DNA of 64,000 bases from sequence record OK905446.1; one strand, given 5' to 3'. Shown in pieces: positions 20,413 through 44,839 of this stretch. A program made the translations under genes and the position numbers. Under the pieces are notes generated by a model that saw only the letters and a list, made by a program, of their open reading frames with translations, had not been told where the DNA came from and did not search any database. Every line of letters begins with the position of its first letter. Positions within the stretch are counted from its first letter, which is position 1.

Positions 20413-21294
20413 TTACGTGCCCACTGCATTACCCCAAATCCATACGTGAACACGTACAGAAACGTTGTAACCACGCTCCAATGCTTTCCCTGCGATTGAA
20501 GCCATGTAACCTTGCTGCTCTTGCTCTTCTTGAGTAGCGCCGCATGGCATAATATAAACCGGTACATCGTGTAATCGGCGTTTTGCTTTGAACTGTGCTA
20601 CCACAGCGTCAAGCTCTTCCCAACAATCTTCAGTATCTACGACGACGGGTTTTAACCAGACGTTGCCGATTTGAGCATATTCGTTAACAACTTCAGGCTT
20701 TATTGCCTTTTCAGGAACTTCGCCTGTTACATTGAATAACTTCGCTGATACGCTGAAGTTTAATGTAACTGATTGCAGCGCATTCCAGTTAATTAACGCC
20801 CACTGTTCTCTGAAGTTGGGCTTGAACTTTTGTGTGCCGTTCGTTTCAATTGTGATGTTCTTTGGGAAATTGTCGATTGAAACAAAGTACTTCATCATTT
20901 CGATGATATTTGCTTGATTCATCAACGGCTCACCGCCAGTAATCACCCAGTGAATATCTCCCCATACTCGATTAGGCAGTTTGTCAAGCATTGCTTCGCA
21001 CACGTCTGAAACTTCAGACTTTGAAGCAAGATGAGCATACTTTTTAGCCCACGTGTATGAAGAGTCACAGCCACGAGTCCATACAGGTAGTTCTTCAACT
21101 GAATTCACGTTGTTAGCTTTCGGATCATAGTCTTTGAAGTCTAATACCCATGTATCTTTGTTCGTTGGATCTTCTTGACCGAAGCCGTGACATTCAAGAT
21201 TACAGCCCCAGAAGCGAAAGAATAAACTAGCGTGACCAGTGTATTTGCCTTCGCCTTGAATGCTGTAGAACATTTCTGTCCATTTTACCTGCAT
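20413..21294 (-). CDS. queE: 7-carboxy-7-deazaguanine synthase QueE (radical SAM)
   Basis: EMFYSIQGEGKYTG, FRFWGCNLECHGF...CDSSY, ITGGEPL, IETNGT, VRVHVWIWG. Confidence 0.85.
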   Translation of the reverse strand: MQVKWTEMFYSIQGEGKYTGHASLFFRFWGCNLECHGFGQEDPTNKDTWVLDFKDYDPKANNVNSVEELPVWTRGCDSSYTWAKKYAHLASKSEVSDVCEAMLDKLPNRVWGDIHWVITGGEPLMNQANIIEMMKYFVSIDNFPKNITIETNGTQKFKPNFREQWALINWNALQSVTLNFSVSAKLFNVTGEVPEKAIKPEVVNEYAQIGNVWLKPVVVDTEDCWEELDAVVAQFKAKRRLHDVPVYIMPCGATQEEQEQQGYMASIAGKALERGYNVSVRVHVWIWGNAVGT

Positions 21295-30268: not shown

Positions 30269-30537
30269 TGAAACCAAATTTTAAAATACTAGAAATCGAC
30301 AAATGGGAACACGCGGTAGTAATTGATTGGGGCGACAATTGCGTTTACAAACACAAGCTACCCCCTGAAATCGTCGAGAACGATTTACCACTTGAATCAA
30401 TCATATTCATTCTTGAAGATCTTCGCCCTAGACCACCAGAGATTCAGTCATTGAAGACTCTAACCGAGTTGATGACTGGCACAATCGACGCTGAACGCGA
30501 CGAAGAATTTCAATCACTATTGGACGACTTGGATTAA
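30265..30537 (+). CDS. small acidic hypothetical protein
   Basis: ATGA overlap with the GT; TAATG coupling to the rSAM gene. Confidence 0.7.
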   Translation: MMKPNFKILEIDKWEHAVVIDWGDNCVYKHKLPPEIVENDLPLESIIFILEDLRPRPPEIQSLKTLTELMTGTIDAERDEEFQSLLDDLD

Positions 30538-31589
30538 TGGACAAATTTGGATTCAAAGACGGGAAAAAGCCACTATGTGGCTCTCCCTTTAACACACGCG
30601 ACGCGAAGCCAGACGGCTATCATATCTGCTGCTCACAATTAAGTGAGCCATTTCCGAACGTTGAAGATTGGTGGCATAGTGACATCATCAACGAGCACCG
30701 CGCCAAGATGTTTGATTACGACACGCTGCCAGAGTACTGCAAAGAATGCATGAGCTACGGTGAACTGTCCGACCAGAAGTATTTCGAATATGAAGCACTT
30801 GAAGAACACCCACGGACGATTCAAATATTGATGTCGAATAAGTGTAACCTAGCGTGTCGAATGTGCTACGGCAAGAACAGCAAATCATACATGGATTTGT
30901 ACGACATCGAAGACACATACGACTACAAACAGCTTGATTTCAGTATCCCGAAAGGTGTTGAAACTGTTGTTCTGTATGGCGGCGAACCATTCATGGACAA
31001 GCGAACAGTCGAAGTTCTAACTGAAGTCATGGAAGAAACAAAAGCTGAAGTTTACATTCTGACCAACGGGACTGTACTTCACACGCCATTAGCTAAGAAA
31101 ATTCTAGCAATCTGCAAAAAGTACAAAGACCGTTTGGTATTCACAATCTCATGTGATGGTGGCAAAGAAAGGAACGAATACATTCGTCAGAATATCGACC
31201 ACGACTTGATGCTTGCTAATGTGCCGCTATTGAAAGAACACAGCAAGCACGTTTGTATGCACCACACTCTAAGTCGAATGAGTTATGACACGATTTACGA
31301 CTTCATTCAAGTTGCTGAAAAAGCTCAAGTGTTTGTTGACTTCGGTACAGTAAAAGCACCTCGTGAAATGTCAATCAAGTTCATGGATCCTAAGATCATC
31401 AAAGCTGCAATGAAAACGCAGTATGAGCAAATGAAGGGCATGGAAGAGGGGTATTACAAAGCAGAATTGTTTAGATGCTTGAAGCAAATGCTATCAGTTG
31501 AATACGAACATCGACCTGAATACGACGTTGAATTTGAAAAGAAAATGAAATACATGGACAATCAGATTCAAATCAAAATGGTGAAATAA
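30537..31589 (+). CDS. radical SAM enzyme with N-terminal twitch/SPASM domain
   Basis: CGSPF...CC...CKEC then CNLACRMC, YGGEP, LTNGT. Confidence 0.9.
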   Translation: MDKFGFKDGKKPLCGSPFNTRDAKPDGYHICCSQLSEPFPNVEDWWHSDIINEHRAKMFDYDTLPEYCKECMSYGELSDQKYFEYEALEEHPRTIQILMSNKCNLACRMCYGKNSKSYMDLYDIEDTYDYKQLDFSIPKGVETVVLYGGEPFMDKRTVEVLTEVMEETKAEVYILTNGTVLHTPLAKKILAICKKYKDRLVFTISCDGGKERNEYIRQNIDHDLMLANVPLLKEHSKHVCMHHTLSRMSYDTIYDFIQVAEKAQVFVDFGTVKAPREMSIKFMDPKIIKAAMKTQYEQMKGMEEGYYKAELFRCLKQMLSVEYEHRPEYDVEFEKKMKYMDNQIQIKMVK

Positions 31590-35269: not shown

Positions 35270-36763
35270 TTACGCAGTTACAATCTTTTTAGCAATTTTC
35301 CATTCACCTTCGTTGAGGAAATTTGCTTGTACGTCAGACAGTTTACGCGCTTCTTCAAGTGAGAAGTCAGCAACTGTTACACCATTTTCGAAGATTGTTT
35401 GCATCACGCTTTTCGGATGTACGCGATTTTCGTAATCTTCAGAAGAGAACGTCACGTAACCACGCGCTGCTGGGTTTGGATTTTCTGCATCAACTGCAAT
35501 CAAGTCCAAGAATCCCGCCTTTGATGCTTTAGTCGGATCAGTCTTTGGCATTTTGAACACGCTAACGTATTCACCATTGATGATCGCAGCACTCATTTTC
35601 ATTGCGAAACGTTGAGTATCACGGTCTAGTTGTTGAAGCAAACCACCACCCATACCGAATGCAATGTTTTCTGCTGACCAGCCTTTACTTTCCATGTAAG
35701 ACAAGATTCGACGAATTTCTTCGATGTTCACGCCGTCGCCTTGAATGATGCGGAAACTTGGGTGTAGAACTTTGTAACCTTTGCTGTTGACTGTGTAGCC
35801 AACGTTCTTACCAAGAATCTCAAGACCTTTCATTACGACATCTACAGGCACACCAGAGTCAGGACGAGCAACGAAAGTACCGCCTTTGCTGATGATTAGC
35901 TCTTTAAAGCGACCAGTTGACACACGATTCATTGCTGCTTCGTAGTCATAGCTGTCCATTACGCAAGCGTATAGACCGCCACCCCATTGCTCGATAGAGT
36001 TCAAGAACGCAAGGTCTTCACCTGCTTCTTTGTAGATTGTAGTTGTTGAGTGTTCACGTGCAGGGATAGAGAATCCCGCAATGAAATCTTCAACGTCTTC
36101 AGCGTATAGTTCTTCAACTGCAATCAACGCTTCTACAGTGTCAGTTCCCAAGAAGTTTTTCAAGTGAGCAGAGCCGCCAATAGCTGCTGATTCGCCACTT
36201 GATACACCACGCGAACCAAAGTCGTGAAGTTTGAATGGCTCGATTTGAGGAATAAGCTCATCATCAACCGTAATGTTCATGAACTGGCGAATGATTTTCT
36301 TAACTTCAAACGAGATTGTTGCTACAGTTGTTGGGTACCAAATAGCACGCAAGATAAACGTTTCAAGATAGCCAGGTAGCCAGCCGAATCGTGGATCTGT
36401 GTTTTCAACCGTCAAGATAGGGTGTTTAACTGGTACTACAGTACCTTCTTTTACCGCACGAATCTTAATTGGCAGCTTGCCTTTTAGTTCGTTAACGATG
36501 ATGTCCCAACCCTTATCATTGAAGACTTCTGAACCGAAGTGCTTTTTGAACAGACGTTTCGCACGCTTGACATCGTTCATTGAAACACCCTTTTCGAGAA
36601 TACGACACATGTATGCCATACCATCGATCATAATTTTGTCGAACTTGCCGCCCCGGCTTTCAACATAATATTGACTGTACTCTAGACCACGAGGGAATTG
36701 AGACCAGTGTGAAACTTTGTAGCTGTCAGTTGCGATTGCGATATTTTGAGTAAGATTTAGCAT
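35270..36763 (-). CDS. nadV: nicotinamide phosphoribosyltransferase
   Basis: TDSYKVSH, HDFGSRG, GTDT, PAREHST, RPDSG, IQGDG, FGMGGGLLQ, RDT. Confidence 0.97.
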   Translation of the reverse strand: MLNLTQNIAIATDSYKVSHWSQFPRGLEYSQYYVESRGGKFDKIMIDGMAYMCRILEKGVSMNDVKRAKRLFKKHFGSEVFNDKGWDIIVNELKGKLPIKIRAVKEGTVVPVKHPILTVENTDPRFGWLPGYLETFILRAIWYPTTVATISFEVKKIIRQFMNITVDDELIPQIEPFKLHDFGSRGVSSGESAAIGGSAHLKNFLGTDTVEALIAVEELYAEDVEDFIAGFSIPAREHSTTTIYKEAGEDLAFLNSIEQWGGGLYACVMDSYDYEAAMNRVSTGRFKELIISKGGTFVARPDSGVPVDVVMKGLEILGKNVGYTVNSKGYKVLHPSFRIIQGDGVNIEEIRRILSYMESKGWSAENIAFGMGGGLLQQLDRDTQRFAMKMSAAIINGEYVSVFKMPKTDPTKASKAGFLDLIAVDAENPNPAARGYVTFSSEDYENRVHPKSVMQTIFENGVTVADFSLEEARKLSDVQANFLNEGEWKIAKKIVTA

Positions 36764-36830: not shown

Positions 36831-38009
36831 TTAAAATTTAAACTCATTCACTGCCATTGACTTATCGGCTGCGCTCCAAATCATCGTTCCGATTTCTTGT
36901 GGCGTTAACCGATCTTTCAATTTTTTAAAGTTGCTATACACCAGTTTGTGTGCTGACATAGCTCGTTCTACGGGACAGTGACCCCGCTTAATCAACCAAT
37001 TGTTGAAATTACTAACTGCTTTCTTGATGTCAATATCAATCACATCACTATCCATATAGCAATGCGGCTCGATTATAAAGTGTCTCTTTACGCCACACGG
37101 CGGACACCAATGCATACCATGCCAGTAATTTTGAGACTTTGACAATTCAGTTGTCGAGCACATAAGTGCCGCTGCAATATGCAGTATACCAGTCGAGTGA
37201 GTGATCACGATAGATGCTTTCTGGTTGATATACTCAGCTACATCTTTCAAAGAACCCTCAATGTATTCAACGTCATTGTCAATTGAATCAACAATTTCTT
37301 TGACTGATGCTTCATTGTTGTGAATAACAAACGTCAGCTTCGGCAAACGCTTCATGTACGAATTCATTTCTCTAATAAATTCAATGTACTCATCGTTCGT
37401 CCATCGCCGTTGGGACGTTGCATCATCACATACATGAAACACAAATCTTTTTTCAATTTCAGTGTAGCTCGGTCTACCACTGAAGTTCCATTTCAAGTCA
37501 AGAAGATATGATTCTTCTTCACAATGTATACCAAAGTATTCTTCTAGAATAATTCGATTCACTTCATTGAAATGAAACCAAATTGGGAATTGTAAGCTGT
37601 TAAAGTGTGATGTGTTGATCACTATGTCGAAATAATCATAGTCAATCGGCAGATTCGCACTTAACATGCTAGTTATCTTAGTATCTGCGACAATATCGCT
37701 GCGAATGTCTCTGTACGCTATGCAGCCACTTGAAATGTTATACTGAACATACAAATCAACTTCGCCGATTTCATCGAAATTTTCGATGTTTACCAGAGAT
37801 ACTTTCCCATTTAACTCATGCAGACTTATCATATATTCGATGAGAGGAAACAATTCATTGTGAAACGTGTACGTATGCATCGGTATGAATATTTCGAACT
37901 CTTTATCGTTTTTTGATAATGCATGAGCAAATTTCATTAAAGGGGCGAATGCGATGATAGAATCACCGACATTCGTACCGGGGATGTCAGCGATTATGCG
38001 AAACATCAA
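36831..38009 (-). CDS. GT9 (heptosyltransferase-like) glycosyltransferase
   Basis: VGDSII, RRWTNDEY, SLKDVAEYI, ITHSTGILHIAAAL. Confidence 0.75.
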   Translation of the reverse strand: MMFRIIADIPGTNVGDSIIAFAPLMKFAHALSKNDKEFEIFIPMHTYTFHNELFPLIEYMISLHELNGKVSLVNIENFDEIGEVDLYVQYNISSGCIAYRDIRSDIVADTKITSMLSANLPIDYDYFDIVINTSHFNSLQFPIWFHFNEVNRIILEEYFGIHCEEESYLLDLKWNFSGRPSYTEIEKRFVFHVCDDATSQRRWTNDEYIEFIREMNSYMKRLPKLTFVIHNNEASVKEIVDSIDNDVEYIEGSLKDVAEYINQKASIVITHSTGILHIAAALMCSTTELSKSQNYWHGMHWCPPCGVKRHFIIEPHCYMDSDVIDIDIKKAVSNFNNWLIKRGHCPVERAMSAHKLVYSNFKKLKDRLTPQEIGTMIWSAADKSMAVNEFKF

Positions 38010-38399: not shown

Positions 38400-38975
38400 A
38401 TGAAAAGGACAATCATCATAGATGTAGACGGGGTTCTGCTTAATTGGAAAGCCAACTTGCCGTTCTTCATGATGCAACTAGGCATGTTCGACAATCTGAA
38501 TATGAATGGCTCGAAAACAGATAGCGACGCACGCTCTTTATTTATGAACGTTAGCGAAATGCAGCTTGGAAAGCTCATAGGGGCATATAACGAACATGAG
38601 TGTGCAAAGTACATACCAGCATACGAAGACGCTTACGAGTCGTTACGTGCGCTTTCAGATAGGTATAACGTTATTGCTCTAACCAAGTTCAGCATGAGTC
38701 GAACAGCATGGACAAATCGAGTACACAATCTAAACGCACTGTTTCCAAACATGATCAGCGAAGTCATTTCAATTGAATACTTCGACTCAAAGGCAAAGTA
38801 CGTTGAGAAATTGCGAGAATTACATGACGTGAGATATTTCATCGACGATTCACAAGACAATATCCGAGAAATCAAAGATGCATTCAAGGATATTCAATGC
38901 ATTCACGTTGACCGTGAATCAGATCACTTGAATGCATTGAAGTACGCTATATATACAAGTAGCATTTTTAACTAA
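38400..38975 (+). CDS. 30.2: HAD-family phosphatase, T4 30.2 homologue
   Basis: DVDGVLLNW, NLNALFP, YFIDD. Confidence 0.85.
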   Translation: MKRTIIIDVDGVLLNWKANLPFFMMQLGMFDNLNMNGSKTDSDARSLFMNVSEMQLGKLIGAYNEHECAKYIPAYEDAYESLRALSDRYNVIALTKFSMSRTAWTNRVHNLNALFPNMISEVISIEYFDSKAKYVEKLRELHDVRYFIDDSQDNIREIKDAFKDIQCIHVDRESDHLNALKYAIYTSSIFN

Positions 38976-38985
38976 GGATTAACAC

Positions 38986-40110
38986 ATGAAACCACTATGT
39001 TATATGCCGTTCAAGCAACTATTGACTAGAGCCAACAACCAGATTTCATTCTGTTGTTCGGCTGATTATGAATGGTTCACTGATGAGACGACACTAGCAG
39101 ACGCATGGAACGATGAGAAGATGGTCGCATATCGTGAAGCTATGCTAAATCACGATATGAGCAAGCTATCGGCAGCTTGCCAGAAATGTATAACCGATAA
39201 CGACCCCGCACGACTTACTGAATATGATGTTCCAGTATCGCCAATCATGCCCGAAGATTCCGTTAAATGGCTGTTGGTATTCCCTAGCAATGAATGCAAC
39301 CAAGCATGTCGATACTGCTACAGCAAACTATCCGACTTGAAGGCGAGATTCTTCAACGAAGAAGACTCAAGTACAAGATTCAACGACCTGAGCACAACGA
39401 TTAACACGGTAAGCAAAGGATTATCTTCATTGACAATTCTAGGTGGCGAAATCACTAGAGCTTCAAATGGCCCCGAAGTTCTTCGTAATGTCGGTGAAAT
39501 TAACGCGCCAGTTCATATATTCACGAATGGTTCAAGTCTTACACTAGCTGATGGTTCAAGCTTGATTGATTCACTCAAAGAGGCAAACGCATCGACTATA
39601 TTCGTTTCAATCGACGGATTGAGAAAAAGCCAAGACTACATACGAATCTTCTCAGACATAGAACGAGCTAAGGCTAACATCGAGATCATGAGCAAGCACT
39701 TTGATGTGGTGATCACTGGTACGGTATCGAATGTATTACTTGAACATTTAGAAACATTCGTTTCAGATTTCTACGAGACGTATGATGGAGATCGAGTTCG
39801 TTTGTCGGTGAACGTTGTCGGTGAACCAGAAAACCCATATTCGATCTACAATATACCTGATTCATACAAGAAGATTCTCGTTGAACGTTTCAAGAAATTG
39901 CAAGAGAAATATATCGGGCTGGATAGAGAGGACTTGTCTAGACCATTCAAATTTGTCAATGAATGTCTGAATTTAGAACATAGTGAATGTAAGTTCAACC
40001 CAGAATTCTTTGTGCTGAACAATCGCATTGACCAAAAGTCAAAAACTGATTTGAAGACGACTTCACCTGAATTTTACGAACAAGTGAAGCCGTATGACTT
40101 GATTATATAA
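38986..40110 (+). CDS. radical SAM enzyme with N-terminal twitch/SPASM domain
   Basis: CYMPF...CC...CQKC then CNQACRYC, LGGE, FTNG. Confidence 0.9.
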   Translation: MKPLCYMPFKQLLTRANNQISFCCSADYEWFTDETTLADAWNDEKMVAYREAMLNHDMSKLSAACQKCITDNDPARLTEYDVPVSPIMPEDSVKWLLVFPSNECNQACRYCYSKLSDLKARFFNEEDSSTRFNDLSTTINTVSKGLSSLTILGGEITRASNGPEVLRNVGEINAPVHIFTNGSSLTLADGSSLIDSLKEANASTIFVSIDGLRKSQDYIRIFSDIERAKANIEIMSKHFDVVITGTVSNVLLEHLETFVSDFYETYDGDRVRLSVNVVGEPENPYSIYNIPDSYKKILVERFKKLQEKYIGLDREDLSRPFKFVNECLNLEHSECKFNPEFFVLNNRIDQKSKTDLKTTSPEFYEQVKPYDLII

Positions 40111-41092
40111 TCACGTTACGTTCAAATTCGCTTAGGAACTTGTTATAACCACTAGCGAATTGTTTGGCTAGTGGTAACGGCTGTTTATTGAGGTACGGCA
40201 ATTGAACATGAATTATGTCATCAATTGTCGTCTTCGGGATAGTCGTCACGCTAAGGTGATGTGGGAAAGTACACATATTCGCAATGATATTGACTTTCCC
40301 ATTTTTCAAATGGGTTGGGTTTATCTCAAACAACATTTCATCGTACAAGTCAACGAAATGATGTATGGATTTATTCGTCATCGTATACTCAACTGCCAAA
40401 TGTATGTTCGGGATGTCGTCGATTGAGTCTAGAACTTTATTGATAGTTCGGTAGATTCTTTCTTGCTTTGCCCCGAACCTCACTTCCTCATTGAATTCCT
40501 TTGGACCATCCATTGAGAAAATCAATGTCACGTCACATTTCAATCGCTGTATCGCTTTCAAAAAACGTTCAGGGAATACAGTACCATTAGACGTAAAGAT
40601 GAATCGTTCGACTTTATCAGGGTCAAGATTCTCAATGATTTCAGCAATCTTCTTGTCTAGAACTGGGTTGCCACCCGAAATCGCAACTGAGCGAGTGTCT
40701 TTCAAGAATGGAATCACATCAAAGTTGTTCTCAATAATCCCCAATTTACCATCATTGTATTTCTTGTCGTAGCTGTGAGAAATCGACGAGCTACACATTT
40801 CACATGCATACTCACATTTATTCGACCGAGCAATAAACAATTCTTGAAAATTCAACTCGACGATGGTTTCAGTTGGCTTGACTTCAGAAGTCACAAGACC
40901 GTCTCTCATGCTTTTACAAGTGCGACAAGATTCTGGGATTTCGCCAGCAATGACCTGCTTACGGAGTTCGATAATCTCATCACTATTCCAAAATGAAATA
41001 TCAGGGTACACTTTCTGACCGGGCATCGAACATATTTTGAAACCGTCTGGTGTAATAGACGGCGATAGAAATGGTGATATGCAATATTTCAT
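40103..41092 (-). CDS. radical SAM enzyme with N-terminal twitch/SPASM domain
   Basis: CISPF...C...CRTC then CEYACEMC, SGGNP, TSNGT. Confidence 0.9.
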   Translation of the reverse strand: MKYCISPFLSPSITPDGFKICSMPGQKVYPDISFWNSDEIIELRKQVIAGEIPESCRTCKSMRDGLVTSEVKPTETIVELNFQELFIARSNKCEYACEMCSSSISHSYDKKYNDGKLGIIENNFDVIPFLKDTRSVAISGGNPVLDKKIAEIIENLDPDKVERFIFTSNGTVFPERFLKAIQRLKCDVTLIFSMDGPKEFNEEVRFGAKQERIYRTINKVLDSIDDIPNIHLAVEYTMTNKSIHHFVDLYDEMLFEINPTHLKNGKVNIIANMCTFPHHLSVTTIPKTTIDDIIHVQLPYLNKQPLPLAKQFASGYNKFLSEFERNVII

Positions 41093-41094
41093 AG

Positions 41095-41988
41095 TTACCC
41101 TATATGTTTAAATCCCGCCGATGTCTGTTTGCCGGGAGTTTGTTTTGACACCGCGTGCCATTGATTGTTTCGTTTCACAGCACACACTTTGTAAATCAAC
41201 CCGTATGTATCTCGTGAAATGTTGCTGAATGCAAAGCTACCAATCCCGAAGAAAACTCGTTTGCTACCGCGATAATATTCAACGAGTGAAATCCATTCAT
41301 CTAGCGATACACTCTCCGCCTGAGCTACAAAGCATTCGGTTTCTGCAAGAACATGATCAATAGTCTCGACAATCGGCTGCGAATCAACCATCACTGTACC
41401 ACGAAAGTTCTTCTTCTTGATCAAGTCAATGCACGCTTGTTTGTCAAACGTGTCAATCATAATACCGCGATAGTTATCCATGCAATATTCTTCGCCATTT
41501 ATCAGTATGTCACTATGCATGGCTACTGGTGCTTTATCGCCAGAAGAAACATAGAATATGCGCGAGAACATGTCACGAGCTTTATCACTCTGTTCTTGAG
41601 TTGAACTAGAACGACCGATCTGAGCATAAGCTGACCCAACACCGAAATCGTTATTCTGTAGAACGTCACGGCAGTGGTGCAATATAGTACCGACTGTGCT
41701 TGAATACCACAATTCATTGTACAACAATGTTTCGATCATATTACCGTATTGCAGCTTGCTTCTGTCTCGAATAGTCACCGTTACCGCCGCCTGCCCCCTT
41801 TCAATAAACGTGCCTTCAGGAACATGCTTAATTTCGATGAAATCATACTCGTTAACTTTCTCAACTAACGAGTCAATCCCATACAGATAAAACCCGTGAG
41901 TTCGACTACCGAAGTACCATTGAGCACCTTGAACATCTTCTCGATAACTATGCTCAAACTTATCGGCTGTGTGTTCGATTAAATTCAT
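41095..41988 (-). CDS. divergent, compact NAMPT/NAPRT-like type II phosphoribosyltransferase
   Basis: Collinear with NadV: VPEGT, WYSSTVGT, AMHS, IDTFD, VDSQ, FFGIG, RDT, GKQTSAG. Confidence 0.75.
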   Translation of the reverse strand: MNLIEHTADKFEHSYREDVQGAQWYFGSRTHGFYLYGIDSLVEKVNEYDFIEIKHVPEGTFIERGQAAVTVTIRDRSKLQYGNMIETLLYNELWYSSTVGTILHHCRDVLQNNDFGVGSAYAQIGRSSSTQEQSDKARDMFSRIFYVSSGDKAPVAMHSDILINGEEYCMDNYRGIMIDTFDKQACIDLIKKKNFRGTVMVDSQPIVETIDHVLAETECFVAQAESVSLDEWISLVEYYRGSKRVFFGIGSFAFSNISRDTYGLIYKVCAVKRNNQWHAVSKQTPGKQTSAGFKHIG

Positions 41989-42649
41989 CTAAAAATTCCT
42001 TGATTTTATCTACCGTATCAGACCCAAACATGTGATTAGCCATTGCAGATATAGCAACATCATTCACAATTTCAGTAAGTCGGTCGATGTCGGGATTATC
42101 AGTGAACATAGAACTAACATGTGCATCAACACACTTACTACAACGACCGCAATTATTATCGCGATTGTAACAATGTTGCAGAGTATTTGCATCAATCCCA
42201 TATTCATGAGCTAGTTGTATAATCTCACGTTTCGTCTTGGTTATAAACGGCTGCTCTATTCTACATTCTCGTCCAAGCAACTTAGACCACATATCAGCGA
42301 TTTCGTCTGAATGTTCGATTGTCGCATCATAGTAAAAGTCGTCACCATTCAGCGTACCGCGATAAATCACAGACGGTCTAAACGCATGAAACACAGCGTT
42401 GAACATCATTGTGTTGCGACCGATTAAATCTGGATTTCGCGGAGTCTTGAACTCGTACGGATCGTGCTGAATATGCAGAAGTTCAGGCATTTCAATGATA
42501 GTAGTTTCAGGTGGTAGCTTTTCTATTTCGAATTCATCAATAGAAAAGCCCCATTTGAAATAAACAGGATGAGGCTTTCTATCGAGAAATTCATATAAAA
42601 CCAAGCTATCTAACCCCGAAACAAGTATGATTTCATCATAGCTGGTCAC
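41960..42649 (-). CDS. QueC-like PP-loop ATPase with C-terminal zinc site
   Basis: SGLDS, GRN, PFITKTKREII, CY...CGRCSKC; GTG start at 42649 after GGAG. Confidence 0.8.
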   Translation of the reverse strand: MTSYDEIILVSGLDSLVLYEFLDRKPHPVYFKWGFSIDEFEIEKLPPETTIIEMPELLHIQHDPYEFKTPRNPDLIGRNTMMFNAVFHAFRPSVIYRGTLNGDDFYYDATIEHSDEIADMWSKLLGRECRIEQPFITKTKREIIQLAHEYGIDANTLQHCYNRDNNCGRCSKCVDAHVSSMFTDNPDIDRLTEIVNDVAISAMANHMFGSDTVDKIKEFLDEFNRTHSR

Positions 42650-43286
42650 GAAGCACTCCAGATTGTCTATAGTAGATTGAATGCACAAACTTATTACAAT
42701 TAGCTACAACTCGCTCGATGTAACCTTCATCTATGAATTGACTATACATCATCATGACATGAAAGTAAATTTCCCACGGGAACACTAGCGTATACATGCT
42801 GTTTCGTTTGTTCTCTTCATCGGGCTTGAAGTCTTTGGTATTGATACTAACGCATTCTTTAACCAAATCAATAGCTCGATAGTAAGCTTCCAAATCACCG
42901 TGTTTTGAAATGTTGTAGTTGGCTATGCAGACACGAGGATTGATTAACCCTTCTCGTTCGCCATTTCTTTTCACTACAAAATCATCAACGTCTCCCGGTT
43001 GCCAAGCACAATGCCAACGACCTGCATCAATGAAACTGGATACGCCGTATGTCTTGTCCATGAAAAAGTTATCCACAGAGATATACACATACTCTTCGGG
43101 TAGTTCTCTTTCGAATGACAGTCGTGGCATTTCAAAGTCAAGTTCAAGATCAGTGATGCAAACAACTCGACCTTTTTTGTGTGTTTCTATGAATGACCCG
43201 ACAAATATAGCCAGTTGATTCAACTGGCTCATGTCATTGATCGATGTGTGAATTACGTAATCATACATTATCGAAATTACCCCCAA
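42636..43286 (-). CDS. hypothetical protein in the modification operon
   Basis: Overlaps both neighbours; no family recognised. Confidence 0.7.
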   Translation of the reverse strand: MGVISIMYDYVIHTSINDMSQLNQLAIFVGSFIETHKKGRVVCITDLELDFEMPRLSFERELPEEYVYISVDNFFMDKTYGVSSFIDAGRWHCAWQPGDVDDFVVKRNGEREGLINPRVCIANYNISKHGDLEAYYRAIDLVKECVSINTKDFKPDEENKRNSMYTLVFPWEIYFHVMMMYSQFIDEGYIERVVANCNKFVHSIYYRQSGVLRDQL

Positions 43287-44118
43287 GTTTTAGTATCGTA
43301 TCGCGATAAAGTTCGTAGTTGAATTCAACATCTTCAACACTACCATACAGACCTGACATTGGTGACGATATGATTCGATTCACAATCGTCTTATGGTCTT
43401 CGCCAGTACGTTCTGCAATGTCCCACACTGTTTTCACAAACGCTGTGTATGTACCAACAAACTTTTCTGAATCAATGAAGTCGATTTCTTTGTCATACAT
43501 CAACGCACTAAACCAGAATTCAGACGTAGTTGGTAACCAAACTCGCTTTGCCGATTTCAATACATCTATACCTGAGATTTTATTGGATAGCACTTTCTTC
43601 GAATCGTATCGAGTCTTGAGCATATTCATGTAATACACAGACGTAATCGGGTGCGGCTTAATAACAGCGTCGGGGTATTGTTCAAATACCAAATCTAGCT
43701 TGTCAAAATCAACTGCAATTTCTAATACATTTGTCCCACACAGAAACACAACGTTGTCATATTGCAGAAATCTAGGCTTTGATGATAGTTTATATTTGTC
43801 AGCGTGGTCGAACTCTCGAAAGTAGTCGTGAATGTAGTCAGACGGATTTTGGTAGGCATGTTCGAATATTTTCCGCTGGAAATCATCGTTCATGTATTTC
43901 AGGTGAATGAAACTGATTTGAGACACCCATTCATGAACACCGATGTTGCCGCCGTCATTGTGATTGATGTCGAAATTGCAAGGGATATTGTTCGAATTCA
44001 ATAAACTGACAATGTCCATGCACATGGCACGAACATTGTCTGCACAGTGACGCAGTTTAAGCGTCCCTATGCGACTCATATTATTGAAACCCGTCATTTC
44101 ATTGTTGTTTGGGTTCAT
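43261..44118 (-). CDS. KpsC/KpsS-like (capsule synthesis) glycosyltransferase
   Basis: DKY, VIKPHP, VLKSAKRVWLPTTSEFWFSALMYDKEI resemble the beta-Kdo/sialyl-transferase GT-B C-terminal lobe. Confidence 0.55.
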   Translation of the reverse strand: MNPNNNEMTGFNNMSRIGTLKLRHCADNVRAMCMDIVSLLNSNNIPCNFDINHNDGGNIGVHEWVSQISFIHLKYMNDDFQRKIFEHAYQNPSDYIHDYFREFDHADKYKLSSKPRFLQYDNVVFLCGTNVLEIAVDFDKLDLVFEQYPDAVIKPHPITSVYYMNMLKTRYDSKKVLSNKISGIDVLKSAKRVWLPTTSEFWFSALMYDKEIDFIDSEKFVGTYTAFVKTVWDIAERTGEDHKTIVNRIISSPMSGLYGSVEDVEFNYELYRDTILKLGGNFDNV

Positions 44119-44332: not shown

Positions 44333-44839
44333 CTAAACGGGAACTTGTGTTGTACGTGTTGTATTGTATGCGGTCGAACGGCTGGTATTATACGTCGTTG
44401 TCCACGTTGTAGTGTAACCAGTTGAACGAGTTGTGTTGTACGACGTTGAACGAGTTGTACTTCTAGATGTTGCATACGTCGTGCTGTAACTACCTTTTGT
44501 TACCGATGTTGTTACAGTCGTGTTGTAAGTGGTAGTATATGTCGTTGTTCTCGTTGACTGATACGTGGTATTTCGAGTAGTTGAACGTGACGTTGAATTC
44601 GACGTTGAATACGTTGTACTACGTGATGTCGAATACGTTGTACTACGTGATGAAAGACGATAGACGCCACGCAAGTTAGCTAAACTTATCGCGCCTGATG
44701 TTGGCACGTGGTTATTTTCAGTAATGTTCGGAACGATACCACCACCTCGGTAATACTGAGACAGCGAAGCAGCGCCGGTTTTGCTGAAATAATCACGCAC
44801 GGTACCAATTGAAATAGCACCAGTTGTAGGTGTTGGCAT
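44333..44839 (-). CDS. Thr/Ser-rich tetrapeptide-repeat protein with a phage fibre-tip-like N-terminal domain
   Basis: N-terminus GAISIG...SLSQYYRGG...VPTSGAISL; C-terminal 106 aa contain 66 Ser/Thr; 24-nt tandem repeat at 44607-44652. Confidence 0.8.
   Translation of the reverse strand: MPTPTTGAISIGTVRDYFSKTGAASLSQYYRGGGIVPNITENNHVPTSGAISLANLRGVYRLSSRSTTYSTSRSTTYSTSNSTSRSTTRNTTYQSTRTTTYTTTYNTTVTTSVTKGSYSTTYATSRSTTRSTSYNTTRSTGYTTTWTTTYNTSRSTAYNTTRTTQVPV

Follow-up and report, generated by a model that had tools for sequence, protein, structure and literature searches.

What does a second, much shorter relative of nicotinamide phosphoribosyltransferase (NAMPT) act on in a phage that also encodes an ordinary enzyme of this family, NadV? 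The question is raised by the window analysed here, a stretch of 64,000 nucleotides (nt) from record OK905446.1, Vibrio phage VS1, a KVP40-like Schizotequatrovirus (schizoT4 phage). A preliminary description of this DNA, made from the letters and the translated open reading frames (ORFs), had proposed that a compact gene next to a QueC-like gene encodes a NAMPT-fold phosphoribosyltransferase with altered base-specificity residues, which would ribosylate another base or acceptor, perhaps the product or substrate of the QueC-like enzyme, and had pointed to the phage enzyme Namat of NARP1 as a precedent. Its account of the compact fold, the altered base residues and the QueC-like link stood up to our analysis, but the parallel to Namat turned out to be only a loose one. 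From sequence comparison, we infer that the protein works as a phosphoribosyltransferase on an acceptor other than nicotinamide and shares one substrate molecule with the QueC-like enzyme. Tentatively, we read it as a phosphoribosyltransferase of NAMPT descent with a rebuilt pocket, paired with a QueC-like ligase, whose acceptor would most likely be a 7-deazaguanine-type carboxylate. The genes on which this argument turns are the following.

41095..41988, minus strand: compact NAMPT-fold phosphoribosyltransferase-like gene (the target), 297 amino acids (aa), ATG start, assigned by Pfam, PHROG, NCBIfam, hhalign and fold
41960..42649, minus strand: QueC/Cap9-like PP-loop ATPase with a four-Cys zinc motif (the partner), 229 aa, overlapping the target start by 29 nt
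35270..36763, minus strand: canonical NadV/NAMPT, a NARP2 component, 497 aa (PF04095 E 2e-47, NAMPT_N E 8e-40)

The target ORF, of 297 aa, was found where the preliminary description had placed it, and NadV has the 497 aa given there; an AAGGA Shine-Dalgarno motif lies 8 nt 5' of the target gene start. The target is the orthologue of KVP40.0259, which is annotated 'hypothetical protein; match to PF04095', and the VS1 genome paper lists it as ORF97 'Phosphoribosyltransferase' beside ORF98 'PP-loop superfamily ATPase' (PMC10473537). Gene call and family label were thus in the public domain before, but the function was not. The protein was matched over its full length in 35 Vibrio phage records at 48-100% identity, in one piece in 34 of them. 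The sole disrupted copy seen is the phi-pp2 orthologue (JN849462.1, ~133480-134371), which aligned in two pieces owing to either a frameshift or a sequencing error in the record; the viral structure library holds just a 210-aa protein for it. Between VS1 and KVP40, nonsynonymous divergence was low (pN 0.13) against saturated synonymous sites (pS 0.80), which indicates strong purifying selection and rejects the idea of a pseudogene. No decay of the kind considered in the preliminary description was therefore seen, and a decayed NadV copy was ruled out by this selection, by orthologues intact down to 48% identity and by the separate clade described below.

The relationship of the target to NAMPT was supported by several kinds of comparison. 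Pfam PF04095 matched with E 3e-7 (30.7 bits against a gathering threshold of 20.8) over residues 173-285 only, and the Pfam scan gave no match to PF18127 (NAMPT_N) in the target. Matches were also obtained to phrog_448 (E 5e-31) and to NCBIfam NF006629 (E 1e-18, score 67 against an equivalog cut-off of 405), and BLASTP against the NadV of the window gave E 3e-8. When an 11-sequence family profile was aligned by hhalign to a 30-sequence NAMPT profile, the probability was 100 and the E-value 1.2e-57 over 353 columns. The target structure is an AlphaFold 2 (AF2) model with a predicted local distance difference test (pLDDT) score of 80 and a predicted template modelling score (pTM) of 0.79. Foldseek searches of this model against the PDB returned NAMPT structures first (E 2e-14, template modelling (TM) score 0.76), and VIA-align superposed 280 of its 297 residues on human NAMPT residues 9-416 (Z 22.5, root-mean-square deviation 2.4 Å), with Namat next (Z 21.2). 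On this model, the target is predicted to have the two-domain fold of type II phosphoribosyltransferases, in agreement with the compact NAMPT fold that had been proposed for it. It does not have the full-length NAMPT architecture, being 297 aa long against about 470-500; relative to NadV, it is without the N-domain helical insert, the GTDT helix, the stretch after RPDSG and ~70 C-terminal residues. The best match of the model in AFDB was cluster A0A7U0SE31 (398 aa, E 2e-18, TM 0.76 by query), which is probably an intermediate-length member of the compact NAMPT-like family.

In NAMPT, the nicotinamide ring lies between F193 and Y18', D219 hydrogen-bonds the amide and R311 lines the pocket, while the equivalents of D313 and R392 bind the ribose and its phosphate (PMC12774641). 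Target residues were placed on this map through the NadV-to-human register and profile alignments, with human NAMPT numbering for the reference positions. The retained residues listed in the preliminary description were recovered: TDSY>ADKF sets D9 at D16 and F11 at Y18, EHS>MHS sets H158 at the phospho-His H247, DSYD>DTFD sets D179 at D279, PDS>VDS sets D202 at D313, and the kept RDT sets R259 at R392. Further kept residues are R29 (R40), K267 (K400), K282 (K415) and K287 (K423). The two reported losses were likewise seen, since the segment with D219, the Asp of GTDT, is deleted and R311, the Arg of RPDSG, is M200. The earlier alignment was wrong around 'QIGRSS', a stretch that BLASTP misplaced as well; the R196 equivalent is kept as R126, and the stacking Phe193, a change missed there, is Q123. 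All residues of the phospho-His and phosphoribosyl set are thus present (H158, D179, D202, R29, R126, R259, K267, K282 and K287), whereas every nicotinamide-pocket position, F193, D219, R311 and Y18, is changed or deleted. The base-specificity residues are therefore altered as had been claimed, with F193 replaced by Q, the D219 segment removed and R311 replaced by M. The Y18 equivalent is F, V or M in schizoT4 orthologues and Y, M or A elsewhere.

This split recurs across the family. In 30 ordinary NAMPTs, D16, Y18, R40, F193, R196, H247, D279, R311, D313, R392, K400, K415 and K423 are present in 30/30, D219, E246 and D354 in 29/30, and D282 in 24/30. We compared with these a catalytic-type set of 15 proteins, made up of 11 compact or intermediate members and 4 longer paralogues from the carrier loci L012, L017 and L018 (loci of other genomes carry L numbers here). 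H247, D279, D313, R392, K400 and K415 are present in 15/15, even where identity drops to about 25%; at R40, 14 members have R and one has K, and 13 retain K423. Ten of the 11 compact or intermediate members have R at R196 and the other has K, and 3 of the 4 longer paralogues have G there. R311, in contrast, is kept in none of the 15, where M, I, L, V, C, A or G stands instead. Thirteen carry Q, K, C, H, I or Y at F193 and two retain F; the D219 segment is missing or varies, two members having D. Taken with the known roles of these residues, the pattern means that the half of the site serving donor, ribose-phosphate and phospho-His has been kept and the nicotinamide half replaced. A third class of paralogues in related modules has lost nearly every catalytic residue:

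L012:4383-5702: pseudoenzyme-class paralogue L012_439
L017:8490-9827: pseudoenzyme-class paralogue L017_445
L018:10812-12137: pseudoenzyme-class paralogue L018_441

Judged by their residues, these 439-445-aa proteins look like pseudoenzymes and are perhaps heterodimer partners. Because such paralogues lie in related modules, the conservation seen in the catalytic-type members is all the more telling. The modules of T5-like vibriophages hold 2-3 NAMPT-like paralogues and 2 QueC-like genes, and in L012 another NAMPT-like paralogue comes as two fragments, one of 123 aa (NAMPT_N) and one of 307 aa.

The family is genuinely rare. An exhaustive hidden Markov model (HMM) search of 1.84 billion representatives returned 12 proteins at E < 1e-10, in compact (296-303 aa) and intermediate (386-405 aa) forms, and a word-indexed search found 4 clusters only. 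Scans of IMG/VR and GTDB for the family gave only KVP40 itself and ordinary full-length NAMPTs (L014-L016). Maximum-likelihood analysis, a phylogeny being one of the checks named in the preliminary description, placed the compact and intermediate proteins in a clade of their own, separate from the 30 ordinary NAMPTs (VS1 NadV among them). Within this clade, the compact forms are a monophyletic group (100/98) that branches from among the intermediates, a position that argues for stepwise reduction from a longer ancestor and against a recent copy of NadV. VS1 NadV itself matches the Xanthomonas campestris pv. campestris (Xcc) NAMPT with E 4e-118, keeps all active-site residues and groups with the ordinary NAMPTs; it is the reference paralogue, outside the target module.

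The target gene is also tied to its QueC-like neighbour. A QueC-like gene is adjacent or in the same block in all schizoT4 subgroups and in L004-6, L008, L009, L011, L012, L017 and L018, that is, in at least four unrelated phage lineages besides schizoT4, and the QueC-like proteins are homologous to one another. The two genes of a pair overlap at their stop and start codons by 4-29 nt. The two families co-diverge (Mantel r 0.94, a value reached in 0 of 5000 permutations; r 0.80 when pairs from one genus are excluded), with the caveat that any two genes of one genome co-vary. The pair spans T4-like, T5-like and podovirus-like phages, and since these carriers are otherwise unrelated, it appears to move as a unit. 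Recurrent pairing, overlaps and co-divergence strongly back the functional link with the adjacent QueC-like gene that had been suggested from the VS1 arrangement.

For the partner, the GTG start was taken from PMC10473537 and P0154. The window protein matches Pfam QueC with E 6.5e-9 and the PADLOC model of Cap9-type QueC with E 1e-11 (residues 7-177), while the NCBIfam QueC model scores it at 30.6, short of the cut-off of 150. Against the PDB, the partner family profile matches QueC (2pg3, E 5e-13) and Cap9 (9nto, E 1e-12) equally well, and its best NadE-type match (NAD_synthase domain) has E 0.26. The canonical QueC signature comprises SGGxDS, YxQxHxxE, VPxRN, YPDC, K165 and C(x)8CxxCxxC (PMC13329287). 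The partner family keeps the PP-loop, the four zinc Cys and the equivalents of R99, Y131, D133 and K165, and has lost C134 in most members. KVP40-like phages carry the full pathway to 7-cyano-7-deazaguanine (preQ0) elsewhere, namely FolE, QueD, QueE, QueC, DpdA2 and QueF (PMC8056088, PMC12028318), so the partner is best regarded as a second, divergent paralogue and not as the preQ0 synthase.

In the reading that we tentatively prefer, the donor side and the ATP/phospho-His machinery would be intact while the acceptor pocket has been rebuilt, and nicotinamide would no longer be a substrate. The two genes would form a two-enzyme unit. The QueC/Cap9-like enzyme would adenylate a carboxylate and convert it to an amide or nitrile, and the NAMPT-like enzyme would join the base to ribose 5-phosphate from phosphoribosyl pyrophosphate (PRPP). 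The shared substrate would be a carboxylated heteroaromatic base of the 7-deazaguanine type, that is, 7-carboxy-7-deazaguanine (CDG), its amide (ADG) or preQ0, supplied by the phage FolE, QueD, QueE and QueC. The reaction would yield a modified nucleotide, or else ribosyl-phosphate joined to a base that had earlier been ligated to something else, which the radical S-adenosylmethionine (SAM) enzymes and the haloacid dehalogenase (HAD)-family phosphatase of the schizoT4 cluster could then tailor. A 7-deazaguanine-type acceptor is suggested because the partner retains part of the QueC/Cap9 signature, because the phage makes CDG and preQ0, and because a precedent exists in TubE, a PRPP-dependent phosphoribosyltransferase acting on CDG (PMC6112128).

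Several observations weigh against this reading. In most partners, Y35 is changed to W or L and Q37 to F, M or I, and the PP-loop reads S-G-x-D-S, one residue short of SGGxDS, with the full loop only in L012_QueC261; given these changes, the substrate may not be a 7-deazaguanine. R311, lost in all members of the target family, also contacts ribose in Namat, and catalysis could be impaired. The compact protein P0006 (L010) has no QueC-like neighbour. Outside schizoT4, the pair belongs to tail-fibre or virion modules. In L004, L009, L011, L017 and L018 it follows Peptidase_S74 fibres and gp38-type adhesins, and in L012 a 3406-aa protein; in L008 it has tail genes on one side and internal-virion genes on the other; in L017 the module is interrupted by a 926-aa tail-fibre gene. 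In schizoT4 phages, the pair sits among genes that are glycosyltransferase-like by Atlas look-alikes. Both settings fit a macromolecular acceptor better than a free base. Radical SAM partners of the QueE type, which would mark a 7-deazapurine pathway, were looked for and not found; those in L004, L011 and L012 are RlmN/Cfr-like and the window pair is of the twitch type with a weak QueE match. For the other carrier phages, ~8-10 kb of sequence around the pair was covered. Among the module neighbours, no substrate with a conserved N-terminal Gly, as for Cap9 and QatC, was found. P0006, a compact member of 303 aa (L010:8001-8912), stands by itself on a contig of 196 kb that looks bacterial; next to it are a transposase, a reverse transcriptase of a group II intron, and DUF4238 and DUF4365 genes.

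The surroundings of the pair in VS1 consist of the following genes.

43261..44118, minus strand: 285-aa protein (phrog_30602, E 3e-142), first gene of the overlapping string
42636..43268, minus strand: 210-216-aa protein (phrog_30897, E 3e-108), co-conserved upstream of the QueC-like gene in schizoT4 phages
40103..41092, minus strand: radical SAM enzyme 1, N-terminal-twitch, 329 aa (PF04055 E 7e-11, NF033640 E 8e-32)
38986..40110, plus strand: radical SAM enzyme 2, N-terminal-twitch, 374 aa (PF04055 E 2e-11, NF033640 E 4e-38)
38400..38975, plus strand: HAD-family phosphatase-like protein related to T4 30.2, 191 aa, with a DVDG motif (phrog_420 E 8e-37, weak PF00702)
36831..38009, minus strand: GT9 (heptosyltransferase)-like protein, 392 aa (PF01075 E 7e-4, below the cut-off; TIGR02193 E 9e-6)

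The gene order in schizoT4 phages runs from the 285-aa and 216-aa proteins through the QueC-like gene, an additional protein of 224 aa (in part of the phages) and the NAMPT-like gene to two N-terminal-twitch radical SAM genes, variable genes, the HAD phosphatase and NadV. The gene for radical SAM enzyme 1 starts 2 nt past the target stop codon, and its product is pVip-like (E 5e-8) with a weak match to QueE 5tgs (E 1e-3). Radical SAM enzyme 2 is viperin-like (E 8e-11; pVip model E 3e-12), and its gene is convergent with that of enzyme 1 with an 8-nt overlap. In the schizoT4 genomics paper, the 6E35-1a radical SAM orthologue is marked 'Defense?/Viperin'. The HAD-like gene is co-conserved with the cluster in schizoT4 phages and directly adjoins the NAMPT-like gene in phage D479; its profile found no informative relative in the PDB. 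The GT9-like gene lies between the cluster and NadV, and none is annotated at the matching place in KVP40. On weak Atlas look-alikes that include Nucleotid_trans and GT8, the 210-216-aa protein may have a GT-A-like fold. The 285-aa protein reaches an Atlas score of 0.97 to viral clusters whose model matches Capsule_synth (TM 0.64), and by this structural resemblance may be a KpsS/LipB-type GT-B glycosyltransferase; its own AF2 model, built from a 3-sequence alignment, has pLDDT 36 and is unusable, and profile searches with the protein against the PDB came back empty. The cluster region is of early/middle type, with ribonucleotide reductase, topoisomerase and PhoH nearby. No T4-type late promoter (TATAAATA) was found near the VS1 cluster, and sigma-70 and terminator scans around it stayed at background level. 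A look for sequencing runs turned up no RNA run and one DNA run, which contained 6% of the words sampled.

Some further features were noted around these genes. In the F86 and 6E35 subgroups, the ~224-aa protein between the QueC-like and NAMPT-like genes (L003:7325-8002, L020:6323-6994) weakly matches an FlmC-family oxygenase dependent on 2-oxoglutarate and Fe(II) (E 6e-5), and a nearby 441-aa protein in F86 is weakly like sugar-1-phosphate nucleotidylyltransferases. A third radical SAM gene (350 aa, PF04055 E 2e-13) lies at 30537-31589 on the plus strand of the window, and a 293-aa Fer4_12 protein, which may be the QueE counterpart of KVP40.0284, is encoded at 20413-21294 on the minus strand. 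A 168-aa ORF at 44333-44839 (minus strand), 72% identical to its orthologue KVP40.0254, carries an N-terminal motif twice (TGAISIGTVRDYF ... SGAISLANLRGVY), and the ~110 residues after it are almost all S, T, R, Y and N. Just upstream of the module, L009, L011 and L004 encode proteins with a doubled G-x-I-S-L...L-R-G N-terminus and a Gly-rich tail. An HMM made from the L009 and L011 proteins found the L004 ORF with E 5e-4 and the 168-aa ORF of the window with E 1.4, rank 5 of 1650 ORFs. The Ser/Thr-rich 168-aa ORF could be a substrate of the cluster, or its resemblance could be coincidence.

These surroundings bear on alternatives in which the acceptor is not a free base. One of them, which we think unlikely but deserving of weight, holds that the compact enzyme would take ribose 5-phosphate from PRPP and attach it to a protein or glycan, for instance a tail fibre or the upstream Ser/Thr- or Gly-rich proteins, that the HAD phosphatase would remove the 5-phosphate, and that the QueC-like enzyme would serve the same acceptor as a sugar or side-chain amidotransferase (like WbpG and PseA) or as a Cap9-like ligase. 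The tail-fibre and virion blocks of L004, L008, L009, L011, L012, L017 and L018, above all the interleaved fibre gene of L017, speak for it, as do the glycosyltransferase-like and HAD neighbours in schizoT4 phages together with the D479 arrangement. However, the glycosyltransferase labels are weak, coming from Atlas look-alikes only, the model of the 285-aa protein is unusable, and the HAD and glycosyltransferase-like genes are absent from the modules of the other phages. Doubled-motif low-complexity proteins are encoded upstream of the module in L009, L011 and L004, perhaps also in VS1, but the VS1 candidate reached just E 1.4 against the HMM of the N-terminal domain, and the VS1 cluster lies in an early/middle-type region without a T4 late-promoter motif nearby. 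It also counts against this explanation that, in the supplementary table on 6E35-1a, a value is given for NadV but none at that place for the 297-aa orthologue. The deletions around the active-site entrance in the compact form speak for it. We know of no type II phosphoribosyltransferase with a macromolecular acceptor, which counts against this explanation, although Kelly et al. in 2022 (Nat Chem Biol) reportedly described ribofuranosylation of bacterial polysaccharides by gPRT-PRP, a precedent for it. QueC-family enzymes modify both proteins (Cap9, QatC) and sugars (WbpG cluster), which again agrees with a macromolecular acceptor (PMC13329287). A phage version of the Cap9-Cap10 logic, in which the ligase would link a CDG-type base by an amide to a phage protein or glycan and the NAMPT-fold enzyme would phosphoribosylate the tethered base, appears to us decidedly unlikely; candidate macromolecules would be a tail fibre or the low-complexity protein encoded upstream.

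Other alternatives keep closer to NAD metabolism or dispense with catalysis. Salvage of a pyridine carboxylate, in which the compact enzyme would make nicotinate mononucleotide (NaMN) and the QueC-like enzyme would amidate it to nicotinamide mononucleotide (NMN), feeding the NadV/NatV (NARP2) route to NAD+, is improbable in our estimate. It would suit the NAMPT/NAPRTase fold (PF04095), the loss of the D219 equivalent that hydrogen-bonds the amide of nicotinamide, and the position of the cluster ~4 kb from NadV. NadE, moreover, is a PP-loop enzyme that amidates nicotinate nucleotides, and an NMN-synthetase type exists. Yet both ring-stacking positions (F193, Y18), kept in 30/30 NAMPTs, are changed, which makes the same mode of binding unlikely for a flat pyridine; the partner is QueC/Cap9-like with a zinc motif and not NadE-like (E 0.26), and the tail-module settings and radical SAM partners would be left unexplained. 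LarE, a PP-loop enzyme acting on a pyridinium carboxylate mononucleotide, is a further point in favour of such salvage (PMC13329287). We give a similarly small chance to a non-catalytic derivative, be it a regulatory or scaffold subunit (such as a heterodimer partner) or a non-turnover binder of PRPP, ADP-ribose (ADPR) or another nucleotide. The loss of R311, F193 and D219, the disappearance of ~200 residues including the C-terminal part of domain A, and the pseudoenzyme paralogues L012_439, L017_445 and L018_441 of related modules would agree with it, but H247, D279, D313, R392, K400 and K415 are strict in 15/15 and R40 and K423 nearly so, a catalyst pattern unlike that of those paralogues. 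A parallel for a binder is type IV CBASS (cyclic oligonucleotide-based anti-phage signalling system), whose Cap9 works with a protein of the tRNA-guanine transglycosylase (TGT) fold whose remodelling lets it bind an N-terminus that carries a modification (bioRxiv 10.1101/2025.04.06.647259). That the target is simply a second nicotinamide phosphoribosyltransferase, or a copy of NadV in decay, is effectively excluded: the public annotation as nicotinate/nicotinamide phosphoribosyltransferase and the phi-pp2 orthologue in two pieces would speak for it, but against it stand the replacement of nicotinamide-pocket residues that are (nearly) invariant in the 30 NAMPTs, the NCBIfam score far below the equivalog cut-off, the clade separate from VS1 NadV, and strong purifying selection with orthologues intact across the genus. 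The weight that remains goes to an explanation beyond those listed here.

Overall, these results describe a small clade in which the donor and energy-coupling machinery has been kept, the acceptor pocket swapped and the gene tied to a QueC/Cap9-like ligase. To our knowledge, NAMPT-fold enzymes have been met almost only in nicotinamide or nicotinate salvage, and the sole documented phage repurposing, that of Namat, changed the donor. The pairing, the altered pocket and the clade are undescribed in the Aravind survey of NAD and ADP-ribose systems, the QueC-family survey and the NARP and schizoT4 genomics papers, with the KVP40 NAD-salvage paper and the 7-deazaguanine review outside this scope; the function and the conserved pairing thus appear new to the literature searched, while gene and fold assignment had been reported before. 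With a 7-deazapurine as acceptor, the pair would offer a nucleotide-level route to modified phage bases beside the known base exchange by DpdA. A protein or glycan acceptor would imply a new modification chemistry on virion proteins, and a tethered base would amount to a protein-linked nucleotide, a new post-translational modification made by a type II phosphoribosyltransferase on a macromolecule. Genome annotation and anti-defence finders should not score the target as a second NadV.

Compared with known systems, the target resembles NAMPT and NadV (human 2G96, Xcc 7YQO, VS1/KVP40 NadV) in its two-domain fold, the phospho-His H158, the acidic D179 and D202 for ribose and Mg, and the phosphate-binding R29, R126, R259, K267, K282 and K287. 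It differs from them in being 200 residues shorter and in its rebuilt nicotinamide pocket, its separate clade and its pairing with a QueC-like gene in the phage lineages found. Its proposed chemistry would be analogous to that of TubE and ToyH of the tubercidin and toyocamycin pathways, in which CDG or preQ0 and PRPP give a 7-deazapurine ribonucleotide. The TubE type has the type I phosphoribosyltransferase fold, which is unrelated to NAMPT. The TubE cluster also contains QueC- and radical-SAM-type genes, and TubE is described there as a purine phosphoribosylpyrophosphate transferase (PMC6112128). As in the Cap9-Cap10 pair of type IV CBASS and in QatC-QatB, a QueC-family ligase stands beside a protein of an N-glycosidic heterocycle family, TGT there and NAMPT here. 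Unlike Cap9-Cap10, the present pair is phage-encoded and not part of a host defence operon, and the fold of the ligase's companion is that of a type II phosphoribosyltransferase and not of TGT; at the module loci, no CD-NTase (cGAS/DncV-like nucleotidyltransferase), TGT-like gene or QatB-like substrate with a conserved N-terminal Gly was seen. The precedent named in the preliminary description, Namat (NARP1, 9W5W/9W5X), holds insofar as it too is a phage NAMPT-fold enzyme that, like the target apparently, has been diverted from plain NMN synthesis. Namat is of full length (491 aa), keeps the whole nicotinamide pocket, has changed its donor from PRPP to ADP-ribose pyrophosphate (ADPR-PP) via a selectivity clamp, and has the PRPS-like Adps as its partner (PMC12774641). 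Pfam and PHROGs scans showed no PRPS-like gene among the target's neighbours. The parallel is loose in this respect: Namat alters the donor side, whereas the target family keeps the donor side, alters the acceptor side and has a QueC-like PP-loop enzyme as its partner.

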